A stretch of 64,000 nucleotides of DNA from Oculina patagonica (Eukaryota), in NCBI RefSeq assembly GCF_052425735.1, contig NC_135762.1:33666001-33730000 (forward strand), written 5' to 3'. Every line of letters starts with the position of its first letter. The stretch's first letter is position 1. Of this stretch, positions 12,112-21,100 are shown one piece after another. The notes beneath the pieces are model-generated. The model saw only the letters and a list, made by a program, of their open reading frames with translations. It had not been told where the DNA came from and did no database searches. The translations under genes were made by a program, and so were the position numbers.

Positions 12112-14066
12112 ATGCCATCACGGTATTTCGAAAGAGAATCACACATGTTCGAAGAGGAATTCGAGATTCAAGAGCCAATCGGCGAGGGATCCTTCGCTAA
12201 GGTTTACAAATGCATAGAGAAAGAGAGCGGGAAGACTTTTGCAGTGAAAGAATTACAAATTGGTCAGAACTTTTCAGACATGGAAGCTATTAGAGAGGAA
12301 ATGGAGATTTGGAGAGGTTTGGAACACGAAAACATTGTATCGCTGTACAGAACCTTTACGGATAATTCGTGTTTGTATCTCGTTTGTGAATATATGGATG
12401 GTGGGAGTTTATTCGACGAGATTGTGGGACAAAAGGTTTACAGTGAGGAACAAGCACGCTCCATTATGAAACAAGTAAGAACATTATATTTCTCAATAAC
12501 CTTTCTTGTTATTATATTCAACATATTACACTTAATTAGAATTTTGTACCTCTAAATACTTAACCGATTTTCATGAGACAAAGACGTTTCTCGGAAAAAT
12601 CGACAAAAAAACTAAAACGGAAAAGGAAATTGTACATTTAAATATTTTGAATAATCAAGAATCAACAGCCAGATTTATTTCGCGTTTCCTGCAGACCAAA
12701 TTAAATAATTATTATTGGATATTAGAGCATCTTTTCTTAGATTTCGAGGAAATGCAGAATAACAAAGCGGCGGCGATGACGACATGACCCTCCTTGTCTA
12801 AGGCATACGTCACTAGAATTATCATGTGACCGTCACGCATGACCTTAGCTTATCTGCCTTATATTATCATTTCTTTACCACCGCATCACGAGCAGTTGCG
12901 CCACATCTGTAGTGGAACGTTTTTATACAAAACAAACGTTATTTTGCACAACTCTCAATTCTGAACAGACTTGCTATTCTCGAATAACTCGCTTCAAAAT
13001 AACCGTGCTGAAAATCGGAGTATTTGTAATACACCTACACACTATTTTTATAGCCCAGAGCTGCAAAAATTGATGGATGTCGAAAGACAATGAGAATACA
13101 TTTCATTTATAGATATCTGCACCCGATTTAGTTATATTGCTTTAAAAACAGAGAGTGCATAGTGCAGGAGTCGAGTTTCAGTTTTTGAGAGCTGTCATTT
13201 TATTACATTTTCCCTTTGGAAGCCACCTCTGCTATGCGGCAGCTTATAACAACAGCCTTTTAAAACAAAACTTTAAATAGCTACAGTTGCTGTCTGACTT
13301 TATGCATGTAACACAAGTAAATTTAACTTGACCTTTGAGCAGTAATGCTACTTAATTTGTTCATCTGCTCTCTCAAGCAAAGAAACTATTTTTTGTACGC
13401 GAATGTTCAACATTTTCTTTGATTCTCATTTCTTTCTACAGCTTTTGCAAGCCCTGGAATACCTTCATGGAAAACGAATTGTTCATCGCGATGTCAAAGC
13501 CGATAACCTTCTTCTCAGTCGTTCAAGACACTCAGACCATGTGACAGTAAAACTTGCTGATTTCGGGCTAGCGCGAAGGCTACCAACATGACTCTGACGT
13601 CATCAGTTGTGACGCAAGTGGTGCGCCCCTATTTCTCGCGCCAGAAACAATATTGGAAGATCTGATTGGTCGGCCAGTTGATATGTGGGCGTGTGGCGTC
13701 ATATTGTTCATTCTTCTGGCGGGCTATCCACCATTTTGGAGCAGCAACGACGAGAAATTATTACTGTCTATTCTACAAGGGCATTACAGTATGCCTTCAC
13801 CATATTGGGACAATGTGTCCGATGAAGCCAAAGGTCTCGTACGGCGATTAATAGTCGTGGAACCCAGTGAGAGATTGACAGTTTCTGAGGCTTTGAACCA
13901 TCCGTGGATTCAAATGGAAGCGCTGCAACGGACACCACAAAAACACGGTCAGCGGAGAAACTTCGCGGCGGTGATTTGCGGTGTTCGAGCCATGCTGAAG
14001 TTCAGAAAAATGAACATCAAAGACTCGTGTCACAGACAAAAGTCAGAAAAAGAAGTCCTAAGCTAA
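12112..14066 (+). CDS. Ca2+/calmodulin-dependent (CAMK group) protein kinase; exons 12112-12474 and 13442-14066; +1 frameshift at ~13585-13591
   Basis: [34 protein letters not shown] and DFG; then after a 1-nt shift [47 protein letters not shown] and a basic amphipathic CaM-binding-like tail ([19 protein letters not shown]). May be a pseudogene or an assembly error. Confidence 0.82.
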
Positions 14067-15132
14067 AAAGTTTTCGCTGTTTTTATTACTCTATACACGT
14101 ATGTACACAAGACATCATACCATCCGCGTTAAAATTAAGGAACTTTAAAGTGTTAAATCATAATGAGCTGACTGCCCTGACTTTTTAAAACGTTTTACAA
14201 GTTGACATTGATAAAGAAACGTCTAGAGTTGTAAACAATATGTGATGGGAGCATTTGTTAACGGAAATATTCTGTAACGCCCCTTCATTGATACTTTTCT
14301 GCTCATTGCTAAAAATAATAACACATGCAAACGGAATTTGTCTAGCTTGTACTCAACGTTTAGTATTATTTTGTCTTTGATATTGTATCAGAATCGTGTT
14401 ATTTATCTAAAACAAGTGATAAAGTTCAATACAAATATTTCACTTTGTAGTCAAGACGACGTTATGTATTTGTTACCCGCACAGCGCTAGCTTGGGCCAG
14501 ATGCAACAACTTTCAATTTGCCATATCTCCAGGTATAATTTCCTTGTAGATTATTGGATCAATTTCCTTCTAAGCTCTATGGCATGGAAAAAGCGAAGCT
14601 AGTGTGCGAAAAAATCGAGAGGCAAGCGGCGAAGTTGCGAGAATTGCTTTTATTTTACCGTTCATTTGTGCATTATTAAATTTCCGCTCGGAATTGGGAT
14701 TTGAGGAAAAGAAGGCGACTTCTTGCATTCTAGGAGTTTCTGAGCACTCGAAGGTCAATTTATCAAATAATTTTTATGAGCCGGAGAATGATAAAGACAA
14801 ACCAAATAAAAATTCCAGCTTTTCCGACCACTGTCAATGGCTTGGAGACCAAGTCCCCTCCCGTCTTCCCCTCCCCTTACTGATTGTCAGCCTTTTGTAT
14901 GTTTCCGTTTAGTCACTTCAGTAACATTTCGCCATTTTACCATTATATGTTTAAGTCGACTGGAATTCCTGCATAGCCTTTTGTCCCGCTTTTCCCGAAG
15001 TTGTCAGTAAAGATGCGGAGGTCAAGAGAGTCAAGAGACTGTGATTTTAAATAAAAATTTCAAATTATTTTGCAGCTTATGTTATCCATCCAAAGACCCT
15101 CCAAGAGCGCTCTGACAAAGAATTTTGTTGTT

Positions 15133-18100: not shown

Positions 18101-21100
18101 CATTCCAGTACTGAAAAAACGTAAGAAATTGAAAAGAAACAGTTGAGAGCCCACGTAGCAATTGTAGTCATCGTATGATAAAGTTGTAACCAGACTTGTG
18201 GTAACTCTTCTCCTCTATGGATAGCCGGTGCATAGCAAGTGTTCTCCCCATGCAGCATTTTGTAAAAATAGGCATTAGTTACATTCTAAATTGGAGAGGC
18301 ACTGTTAAAATTCGGTTCAACAATACAATACGTAAACAATAATTGCCTTTGCTCAAATTATAGATCACTAAATGCCAAGTCCGACCGGGTAAGGAGGGAG
18401 GCGATGATCGTTAGTGGAGGGATCGTTGAACAGAGGTTCTTTCGTGCGTTTGTTGTGATTCGTTCGACGAGCTCTCCCCCCCCCTCCCCCCCCCCGCATC
18501 TCTCTGTTTTCTTTCGTTGTTGGCACTCAGGTTTTCACCATGCTATGTCTATCTTTTTTATTTTTATAAAATTTTTTTTTTTGGGTTTTTTTTTTTTTTT
18601 TTTTTCACTCTTAGATTCTAATTGGATAATTAAAAAGAAACCTGGCCTTGTCCAGGCATGAGGAAAAAATGAATAAGGTATAGTTCTACTTGACCAACAG
18701 AGACGACAATGTTTTCCATCTTACCTGCCTCACCCAGACGTTTGTAGTAATGACTTCTTCTTTTTCATCCTTTGTAAAAGAAAAGAATGGCGTAAAACGT
18801 TTCTGTAAACACGGATTACCACCACAACCACCCCCCGATTATAATGCAAAACTTTAAGCCAGCAAAATGTTACGGCAAAAAGAGCAAGAGAAAACTGAAT
18901 AAAGTGGTGAAGAGTACACATGACCTCACTTGGTTTGACACAATACCTTCCAACAACAATTATTTTCCCGTTATATCCCATTTTCTCAGAACTTGGAAGT
19001 TAGGGCTGGCGGCTGTTAGAGCACATCTATTGGCGGTGAAGTATTTTCCTTATTAAAGCTCAAATATTTGTGTAACACAGAATGTTCGGATCAGTTCTTC
19101 TTTAAACTGCGTGTCAAACAGTTTATTTGCACACATCTTCATTGCTAACAAAATTTAATGAACGCTACGAACTTTGCACCTGAAGCCAGGTCGACGACAG
19201 GTTATGCCACATGTTTTCCCATCATTAAATGGGGCCGTTTAGTAGGAATCACGGAATGAAGTGTAACGCAGCACATTTCTTCTCAACTTGTTTTGTAATT
19301 GTACGTTGCTAGGCGTCAAAATTGCAGTCCGGCCGTTTTCCCTTCTCGCTTCTTACATTTCTCACTTGACGATCTTTATGGGGGAAAGAAAGGGCTACTT
19401 ATAGTCTTCATGCAACCTAGTTCACAGGCGTTCTCTCTTGTTTTGGTGACCGCGCAAAGTCTGGGGCAGGGGCAGGCGAGTGCTTTTCAATGACGTCACC
19501 CCTCACGATAGAGCTCAGACTCCATTGAGCCAAGAAACGCCCAGGAATTGGGCTGGTCTATATGGTCTATGCTGGCATTCAGTGGACCAGGTTTTTAAAT
19601 TAATGATCTGTGGAAGAGTCAGTGAAGGTTGGACAAACTACCGTAAAATTCCGGTTATAGCCCCCCCTTTTTTCCCCCCCCCGTTTTCCCCCCTCCCTTG
19701 TAAAAAANNNNNNNNNNNNNNNNNNNNNNNNNNNNNNNNNNNNNNNNNNNNNNNNNNNNNNNNNNNNNNNNNNNNNNNNNNNNNNNNNNNNNNNNNNNNN
19801 NNNNNNNNNNNNNNNNNNNNNNNNNNNNNNNNNNNNCCCCCCCTCCCCCCCCCTTTTCCCTACTATGCTCGTACACAAAGATGAAGTCAACAACAATAAC
19901 AACAATCATTTTATTTGCAAGCCTTGTGAGAATTTTTTTCACTTGCATCTCAGGCATCTCTCTTGCAATGGAAGAAATAAAATAACATAAATACAGTACC
20001 CTCCTCTCTGCCATTAGCTGGATTTGTGTTCGGTGGTGCCAAATTCATCTTCTATCACAATATTGACAGCTGTAAATAGGCAGCTGGTCAGCCTCCAGCC
20101 AGTTGGGATTTTTAACAAGTTTTTGTTCTGCTTTTCTATAACTTTCGTTCTATTTCCCCAAATTACACAGCAGTGCTAAATGCATCTTGTATTATTTAAC
20201 TCCATGTTCTAACTGCTGTCTCCTATATTTCTCAAAACAATTTAATATGTATATTCCACTGGCAGTTGTAACAATGAAGCCTGAAGACAAGATCGCTTTT
20301 CTGGCATGATACCAACTGGGTGCCACTTATCTTCCTGGACAGCATAAAACTCCACACTATCAAGTTAGTATTGTTCCCAGTTAGCATCTTCGCCTCCAAA
20401 CAGATAGACACAATTTCCAGCGCTGACAATACCACATGCAGGACGTGGGACAATGGGACTAGACACAAGGCTCCACTGATTCAAACTTTTGTCAAACATT
20501 TCACAACTTGTTTCAATATTCTTGAAATTCATGTCACAATAACCACAAACAACAATTATTTTTTCACCAGTGGTGGCTGCGGCAGCAAATCTTCTTGGAT
20601 TGTTCATATCTGGAATCTGACTCCACTTATCATTGGATGGGTCATAGCACTCTACAGTCTTACAACAGGCATTGCCATCATGACCTGCCATGACATAGAT
20701 GAACTCATCAAGAGCAACAACACAGTGGGCAGCCCGAGGAAATCTCATTGGTGACAGCTCCTTCCATTTATTAAGTTTGTAGTTATACTTTGTAACCTTG
20801 CGCCAATGACCTTCCTCACCACCAATCATGTAAAGCTCATCGTTGTGTGTAACCAAAGAACTGTGTGGACTGGCAGGCAAGCTCTCGTCACTAGCAAACC
20901 ACTTGTTTTGCCCAGGGTTGAAGTAATATAATGGGGCATCTGAGTTGCCTCCCATCACATACAGCTGACCAGCACAAACTGCAGCAGCATGTCGTGTGCG
21001 AGGGCATGGCATCACGGGTAGGTTAAACCACTTCTTAGTGGCAAGAACCAATCCAAGGGTATCAGCAATTGGGCTTGAAGACACTGTGTGACCGCCAGTG

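Follow-up and report, generated by a model that had tools for sequence, protein, structure and literature searches.

Coding frames that are interrupted by a stop and conserved beyond it have described counterparts of several kinds. In antizyme mRNA, +1 frameshifting occurs at UCC-UGA-U, with a UGA in the 0 frame at the shift point and a product that goes on in the +1 frame. Read-through or selenocysteine insertion at UGA-C likewise leaves conserved in-frame sequence after the stop, and UGA-C and UAA-C are leaky termination contexts. Polishing of an assembly can leave an indel at a heterozygous multi-nucleotide site, so that a single extra coding base is found in no independent read set and the gene is otherwise intact, and nonsense variants segregate in large, expanded gene families through one-step changes with no decay downstream.

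The window analysed here, a 64,000-nt stretch of the Oculina patagonica genome (contig NC_135762.1), holds a cluster of sites that invites comparison with each of these. An earlier note, made from the letters of the window, had described three neighbouring genes as broken by stops with coding continuing beyond them: a CAMK-like kinase, a nicotinic acetylcholine receptor (nAChR)-like receptor with two stops, and a Kelch gene nested within the receptor. It had proposed recoding or editing, null alleles in a silenced duplicate or decaying block, or a locally poor consensus. A sequence check found all four lesions in the assembly at the positions first given. They were then compared with relatives and, over a 6-kb span, with four public read sets, all in the form of Logan contigs, which drop minor alleles and so speak neither to zygosity nor to whether the assembled individual carries the extra kinase base: two conspecific DNA runs (X1 and X2), an RNA run (X9) and a related taxon (X5). 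We consider it likely that the four lesions have separate, ordinary causes and that they reflect neither a local recoding system nor a decaying duplicate. None of the four calls for recoding or editing, and the order of preference in the earlier note, which placed null alleles and poor consensus above recoding, holds. Its picture of three broken neighbours is correct as to the letters of the assembly; it probably fails for the kinase, whose extra base is absent from the reads, and it fails for the second receptor TGA, which is intronic in the observed transcript.

The kinase features are as follows.

12112–12474, plus strand: CAMK-like kinase coding exon 1 (121 codons, ATG at 12112; Pfam Pkinase positions 1–107).
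13442–14066, plus strand: CAMK-like kinase coding exon 2; its frame is broken in the assembly and intact in every read set.
13580–13589, plus strand: site of the kinase lesion, which reads CTACCAACAT (10 nt) in the window.

The two exons are joined in X9 RNA (12474 to 13442, with GT..AG ends), and the gene is spliced and expressed in that run. Pfam places Pkinase positions 107–148 before the break and 157–263 after it, in two frames. The interruption reads ACA-TGA-C (13586–13592), and the kinase frame picks up again at +1, which is the point of likeness to antizyme. The extra base is, however, missing from 4 of the 4 read sets, spliced RNA included. Relative to the window, X1, X2 and X5 lack one base at 13585, at the full depth of their contigs, and spliced X9 lacks one at 13582; either omission restores the frame, giving RRLPHDSD or RRLQHDSD. 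The corresponding motif, RRLPxDSD, runs unbroken across the site in 13 homologues with 77–95% identity. Unlike antizyme, the conspecific kinase mRNA and all 13 relatives are thus continuous, and the site lies in the activation segment and not at a regulatory junction. No SECIS or known frameshift-stimulating element was found in an Rfam scan of 11500–22500 at E ≤ 1, which returned only two sub-threshold snoRNA-like matches. A programmed +1 frameshift was rejected on the in-frame RNA contig and the in-frame relatives.

The composition of the lesion points instead to the assembly. The read alleles, as deduced from gap placement in the read alignments and not read off the contigs, are 9 letters each: CTACCACAT, encoding Leu-Pro-His, in X1, X2 and X5, and CTCCAACAT, encoding Leu-Gln-His, in X9 RNA. 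The 10-nt string CTACCAACAT is the exact union of these two in-frame alleles, that is, of allele 1 and allele 2 aligned as an insertion and a deletion. On this basis the alleles would differ by two nearby substitutions, a difference that an aligner can depict as one insertion plus one deletion, and the assembly may have kept the inserted base of both depictions, giving 10 letters against 9 in each allele. The extra base is probably a consensus artefact, and at most a private allele; the suggestion of a poor local consensus in the earlier note fits this gene. The case resembles a polishing indel in all the respects given above, including a gene that is otherwise intact, expressed and spliced, and departs from it in that we infer the heterozygosity of the assembled individual for the two alleles.

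For the receptor, the supported exons and one putative exon are listed below; gene and stops lie on the minus strand.

15133–15350, minus strand: last coding exon, with the MA helix, M4 and the stop TAA at 15133–15135 (Pfam Neur_chan_memb positions 183–228).
15487–15552, minus strand: putative 66-nt exon with the second TGA, intronic in the observed transcript.
15886–15979, minus strand: exon in which the M3-M4 loop starts; includes the TGA at 15893–15895 (RNA joints 15350 to 15886 and 15979 to 16353).
16353–16508, minus strand: exon with M3 (RNA joints, Pfam, tblastn with the orthologue P0185 and with P0199).
16774–17047, minus strand: exon with the end of the ligand-binding domain, M1 and M2 (RNA joints, Pfam, tblastn).
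17436–17660, minus strand: exon of the ligand-binding domain with the Cys-loop (Pfam Neur_chan_LBD, 2e-20; RNA joint 17047 to 17436; tblastn).
18001–18113, minus strand: exon of the ligand-binding domain (tblastn with P0185 residues 77–112).
18725–18769, minus strand: exon of the ligand-binding domain (tblastn with P0185 residues 63–77, 100% identity).
23895–24023, minus strand: 5′ coding exon, upstream of the Kelch gene (tblastn with P0185 residues 16–58, 81%, E = 1.6e-17).

The receptor is spliced and expressed in X9, where four GT..AG joints yield one open reading frame with a single TGA; both joints of the 15886–15979 exon have GT..AG ends on the minus strand. A loose end of X9 at 17662 runs on with the letters of 18003 onward, tying the Cys-loop exon to exon 18001–18113, and the last exon aligns with residues 369–439 of the distant full-length homologue P0199. 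The second lesion, CAG-TGA-A (15527–15529, minus strand), falls in an intron. The X9 joint from 15350 to 15886 leaves out 15351–15885, including the putative exon that had been drawn around this TGA, X9 depth is 0 over 15400–15799, and an alignment with P0199 showed no counterpart of the 66-nt segment. The exon counted as coding in the earlier note is therefore skipped, and unused, in the observed transcript. Two of the four lesions are left as coding stops in the supported gene model, and the C that the note had seen after the first stop of each gene carries no weight as a pattern.

The first receptor lesion, GAA-TGA-C (15893–15895, minus strand), lies 7 nt before the last exon junction and is a genuine TGG>TGA (Trp-to-stop) allele segregating in the species. 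X2 (51.9/51.9), X9 (17.8/17.8) and X5 (152.6/152.6) have T>C at 15893, which makes the codon TGG, although these values are not a reading of zygosity, as Logan contigs drop minor alleles. X1 and the window keep the T. Stop and sense alleles thus both occur in the species. The ancestral state is sense: P0199, which has the same 31-residue exon, carries Trp at the position aligned with the TGA. Depending on whether X1 is the assembled individual, the TGA allele is on record from one individual or from two. The G in X9 RNA might suggest A-to-I editing. The DNA compared with it comes from other samples, X2 and X5, and both carry the G. X9 also shares flanking variants with DNA run X2 (13937, 14872, 14892–93, 15286 and 15911), which places the G on a haplotype common to the two, and editing need not be invoked. 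The UGA is followed by C and by conserved in-frame sequence, as at sites of read-through or selenocysteine insertion. Unlike those, the stop is not conserved (TGG in other individuals and in the related taxon, Trp in P0199) and is accompanied by no SECIS in the Rfam scan, and this candidate was rejected. The product of the TGA allele would lack the MA helix and M4. In X9, from another individual, the sense allele is transcribed and its splicing is correct. Escape from nonsense-mediated decay is governed in mammals by a 50–55-nt rule; by that rule the TGA transcript would escape.

The remaining stop and the nearby assembly gap have these positions.

20242–21948, minus strand: intronless BTB-BACK-Kelch gene in an nAChR intron (Pfam BTB, BACK and Kelch).
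19708–19836, no strand: assembly gap (N) in an nAChR intron, between the 3′ end of the Kelch gene and the receptor exon at 18769.

The Kelch gene is nested in the receptor, because the 5′ receptor exon at 23895–24023 sits upstream of it. Its frame comprises 527 codons, a TAA at 20365–20367 (TAC-TAA-C, minus strand), 40 conserved codons and a terminal TAA at 20242–20244. Homologues are 567–576 aa long and can be aligned beyond the stop, and the read-through product here, at 568 aa, has the family length. The nearest orthologue has AAA (Lys) at the stop, one step from TAA. Omega against that orthologue is 0.25 upstream of the stop and about 0.07 downstream, with 11 synonymous and 4 non-synonymous differences after it, so that the check on downstream constraint that the earlier note had proposed came out as a ratio below 1, with a sense codon in the orthologue. 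Synteny with another coral (contig L017) bore out the Kelch codon as well as the nested position of the gene; lacking the 3′ halves of the receptor and kinase, this contig offers no orthologue for those two sites. No Kelch sequence from another source of the same species turned up in the protein collection or the JGI metagenomes: a full-length protein search returned the 527-aa product of the window itself and, beyond it, only relatives of at most 78% identity, a 120-aa C-terminal query reached 83% at best, and an exact pattern around the stop had 0 matches in JGI metagenomes. Both gene families are large in this genome, with at least 295 candidate Cys-loop ligand-binding-domain exons and at least 511 BACK-domain candidates. 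Counted roughly, some 40% of the 150 BACK candidates that were scored have open frames shorter than 540 aa, and truncated Kelch copies look common in the genome.

The Kelch stop is outside the 6-kb span compared with reads, and its reading is based on the orthologue codon AAA. Judged in this way from sequence, a null allele of the assembled haplotype is the likeliest account of the TAA, ahead of a base error; the TAA would be a very recent AAA>TAA (Lys-to-stop) change in one member of a family with copies in the hundreds. Together with the TGG>TGA change in the receptor it would match segregating nonsense variants in expanded families, in being one step from a sense codon found in conspecifics (receptor) or in a related taxon and in showing no downstream decay; it differs from described cases in that the Kelch variant is argued from sequence comparison. 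That the TAA is an assembly base error like the kinase indel, leaving the receptor TGA as the only real lesion, is a possibility that we regard as unlikely but would keep in view. The same assembly probably contains at least one consensus error, 6.8 kb away, the gap is 529 nt from the stop, and the stop is one base from the orthologue's Lys codon with no decay after it. Against this, consensus sequences suffer wrong bases less often than wrong indels, the other private substitutions of the window resemble ordinary polymorphism, and truncated family copies look common.

A further reading takes the assembled haplotype to be truly null at all three genes (the 1-nt kinase insertion, the receptor TGA and the Kelch TAA). 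Such a haplotype would be locally degenerate, one, for example, that is sheltered in heterozygotes or lies where recombination is low. Three lesions on one 7-kb haplotype, if all were real, would be somewhat above expectation, a point that tells against the separate causes preferred here. The TGA allele is real, being present in X1, and the window has private differences from all four runs at 13286 and 14276, about 1 per kb, and one such private variant could be an indel. Deeply diverged haplotypes also exist in X5, with about 8% divergence over 13221–14822 and two contigs at 16684–16891. The extra kinase base is nonetheless in 0 of 4 samples, and a random insertion would have to strike the site of an allele difference and produce the exact union of both alleles, which is unlikely unless it is an artefact or a compensated intermediate. 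X1, moreover, has the TGA but not the kinase insertion, and the lesions therefore do not form a single fixed block of haplotype. We judge this reading distinctly improbable as a whole. One version of it makes the kinase frameshift an intermediate between Leu-Pro-His and Leu-Gln-His, later compensated by a deletion 3 nt upstream. That the assembled haplotype carries this intermediate beside two true nonsense alleles is a long shot; if true, it would be a natural sheltered, degenerating coral haplotype with frameshift compensation caught in progress.

The duplicate form of the decaying-block proposal fared worse than its null alleles. Those stand for the receptor, where the TGA segregates, and probably for the Kelch TAA. 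The search for an intact second copy that the earlier note had called for was run on the 529-Mb assembly and found no second copy or haplotig of the block, the best other matches being paralogues of 66–71% identity. A silenced segmental duplicate or pseudogene block was rejected on this result, on the expression of the kinase and receptor and on the Kelch omega values. Nor does the N gap, which the note had taken as a sign of poor consensus, bear on the frames. It is intronic, with C-rich low-complexity DNA on its flanks; none of the exons of the three genes maps inside 19708–19836, and it touches none of the frames because the aligned stretches of P0185 (residues 16–58 and 63–340) all map outside it.

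Decoding of the stops, whether by +1 frameshifting at ACA-UGA-C, by UGA or UAA read-through or selenocysteine insertion, or by A-to-I editing, would account for the conserved sequence beyond each stop, the leaky contexts and the G in X9 RNA, but it is already largely refuted and has a negligible chance of being right: the kinase mRNA is in frame without the extra base and requires no shift; one of the two receptor stops is intronic; the receptor G also occurs in the DNA of X2 and X5; the ancestral Kelch codon is Lys, and editing TAA would give Trp and take two edits; and sense alleles in conspecifics mark the stops as variants and not as a conserved signal.

The lesions have no bearing on translation mechanisms. 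For annotation, the kinase should be entered as intact in this assembly, at 328 aa, and the receptor model should have a short M3-M4 loop, without the 66-nt exon, and be recorded with a Trp/stop polymorphism. A single comparison with public reads resolved the cluster into a probable assembly artefact, a wrongly drawn exon and null alleles of an ordinary kind, and the case is a caution that, in the assembly of a diploid coral, clustered genes that are interrupted yet conserved can mimic recoding.

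The four lesions described in the earlier note are all present in the assembly at the positions it gave: a +1 shift in a kinase gene (13580-13589), two TGA codons in a receptor gene (15893-15895 and 15527-15529, minus strand) and a TAA in a Kelch gene (20365-20367, minus strand). The genes, and the receptor segments located with P0185, a close receptor orthologue used to map receptor exons on the window, are as follows.

12112-12474 (exon 1) and 13442-14066 (exon 2), plus strand: small two-exon CAMK-type kinase (Pfam Pkinase)
Tail to tail with the kinase, minus strand: Cys-loop nAChR-like receptor subunit (Pfam Neur_chan_LBD and Neur_chan_memb on its exons)
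20242-21948, minus strand: intronless BTB-BACK-Kelch gene (Pfam BTB, BACK and Kelch)
23895-24023: receptor, P0185 residues 16-58
18725-18769: receptor, P0185 residues 63-77
18003-18113: receptor, P0185 residues 77-112
Below 17662: receptor, later P0185 exons

The P0185 exons flank the Kelch gene on both sides, confirming that it is nested, and place both this gene and the N run (19708-19836) within one receptor intron (18769-23895, 5.1 kb), with host and nested gene on the same strand. The order Kelch, then receptor LBD exons, is kept on L017, a syntenic contig of another coral. There, at L017:19663-20780, a receptor LBD exon is followed by 1.1 kb of microsatellite-rich DNA and then by DNA that runs collinear with the kinase intron; the window's 4 kb (within 13377-17430) holding the receptor M1-M4 exons and kinase exon 2 has no counterpart, reflecting either a deletion that took the 3′ half of each of these two tail-to-tail genes or a collapsed stretch of that assembly. 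Downstream of the Kelch gene, about 150 nt (18995-19146) match the initial 170 nt of the Kelch orthologue's coding sequence (L017:9997-10169) at 70% identity and are probably what remains of a duplicated BTB N-terminus. Among solved structures, the kinase is closest to CaMKII, CASK and CaMKI and the Kelch gene to KEAP1, KLHL22 and KBTBD2.

Public runs were searched with the locus, yielding 20 matching runs, all as Logan contigs, which report the presence of alleles and not zygosity, minor alleles or frequency. Four were aligned to 12000-17999: X1 (DNA, organism A, which may or may not be the assembled individual), X2 (DNA, ‘coral metagenome’, almost matching X1 in similarity to the window), X5 (DNA, organism B) and X9 (organism A, possible RNA by label). 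Five GT..AG joints in X9 coincide with kinase and receptor exon boundaries, so this run does contain spliced RNA. X5 carries a haplotype about 8% diverged across the kinase 3′ region (13221-14822), and at 16684-16891 two contigs of roughly half depth each, with 1 and 9 differences from the window; the pattern suggests deeply diverged haplotypes or introgression. X2 also shows an indel polymorphism in a receptor intron, with 32 different letters in place of 97 nt (16000-16098).

The first receptor TGA is a genuine nonsense allele, and a derived one. With the exon that begins at 17660 added, the X9 receptor joints (17047 to 17436, 16508 to 16774, 15979 to 16353 and 15350 to 15886) assemble into an open reading frame interrupted by just one TGA (...IVQE*RQVKLREN...). 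This stop is located 7 nt upstream of the last exon junction and would cut off the MA helix and M4. The plus-strand T at 15893, corresponding to the A of this TGA, is C (TGG, Trp) in X2, X9 and X5 and is kept in X1; the TGA allele is thus present in the assembly and X1, one individual or two. Because X9 and the DNA run X2 have several flanking variants in common (13937, 14872, 14892-93, 15286 and 15911), the G of X9 at this site belongs to a genomic haplotype and is not evidence of editing. In P0199, a full-length homologue with 63% identity over the M1-M2 exon, the stretch equivalent to this exon is likewise 31 residues long, with Trp aligned to the TGA (...CTAWKQ|VAIRK...). TGG in three runs and Trp in P0199 identify TGG as ancestral and TGA as derived. 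The M3-M4 cytoplasmic loop (15133-15979) is unusually short, with about 65 residues in two exons between M3 and M4, an architecture matched by P0199.

The second receptor stop (CAG-TGA-A) is intronic and drops out of the coding sequence. It had been placed in a putative 66-nt exon (15487-15552) whose splice sites are plausible and whose length is a multiple of three, so that phases looked preserved. The X9 joint runs straight from 15886 to 15350, bypassing this segment; X9 has no coverage at 15400-15799, and P0199 has no residues matching the segment.

At the kinase site, where the Pkinase match is spread over two frames (positions 107-148 before the break, 157-263 after), the window reads CTACCAACAT. 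In the contig alignments one base is absent at 13585 in X1, X2 and X5 and at 13582 in X9, and in each run the contig with the deletion carries all depth there. From gap placement, the alleles are CTACCACAT (Leu-Pro-His) and CTCCAACAT (Leu-Gln-His), both staying in frame into the next 19 residues. The motif RRLP-x-DSDVISCD is uninterrupted in 13 homologous exon products of other corals (77-95% identity), three of them identical over it to the window minus one A. Two substitutions, spaced two bases apart, distinguish the alleles, a difference that an aligner could equally write as one insertion and one deletion; keeping the inserted base of both representations would yield exactly the ten letters of the window. 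Such double insertions are a familiar consensus or polishing failure at heterozygous sites, and the extra base is probably an artefact of this kind. A real private insertion in the assembled haplotype is less likely; the window does differ from all four runs elsewhere (13286 and 14276), but an insertion would need to fall on exactly this spot. Artefact or not, the kinase mRNA of the species is in frame, and frameshifting is not needed.

The Kelch TAA probably represents a real null allele, judging from indirect evidence that includes comparison with P0002, the closest Kelch orthologue (78% identity), encoded on L017 and there too upstream of the receptor LBD exons. Read through, the window gene gives 568 aa, against 567-576 aa in relatives. 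The stop is not conserved in this related coral, P0002 having AAA (Lys) at the site. Coding constraint beyond it is evident: over the 40 codons past the TAA, 11 of the differences from P0002 are synonymous and 4 non-synonymous, with omega about 0.07 downstream and 0.25 upstream. The ancestral-like AAA and constrained downstream codons point either to a single-step change of very recent date or to a base error; an error in the assembly is a distinctly weaker candidate than a null allele, and anything besides these two is highly improbable. With at least 511 BACK candidates in the genome, and by a rough count about 40% of 150 scored having open frames below 540 aa, a null allele in one member would be unremarkable.

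The N run, taken earlier as a sign of locally poor consensus, has no bearing on the four reading frames: it is intronic in the receptor, no coding exon of the kinase, receptor or Kelch gene falls in it or spans it, and 529 nt separate it from the closest lesion, the Kelch TAA. The proposal of a silenced segmental duplicate finds no intact copy elsewhere: queries 13300-19700 and 19840-22200 against the whole 529-Mb assembly recovered no second block or haplotig, with high identity at their own locus only, followed by paralogues (66-71%) and short interspersed repeats. Within the window, interspersed repeats lie at 16662-16706, with a depth spike and loose ends in all DNA runs, and 19402-19561, with more than 30 other genomic matches at 72-85% identity.

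Recoding fares worst, as the earlier ranking below poor consensus and null alleles had it: one ‘stop’ is intronic, one break occurs in no reads, one stop is polymorphic with a conspecific sense codon, and neither SECIS nor frameshift elements turned up when 11500-22500 was compared with Rfam (E <= 1), the only hits being two sub-threshold snoRNA-like matches in simple sequence. With the intronic stop and the absent kinase break removed, the C shared after the first stop of all three genes rests on two codons and is no signal. The broken three-gene cluster is borne out in part as a description of the assembly and is not a biological cluster. Nothing at this locus is new in kind.
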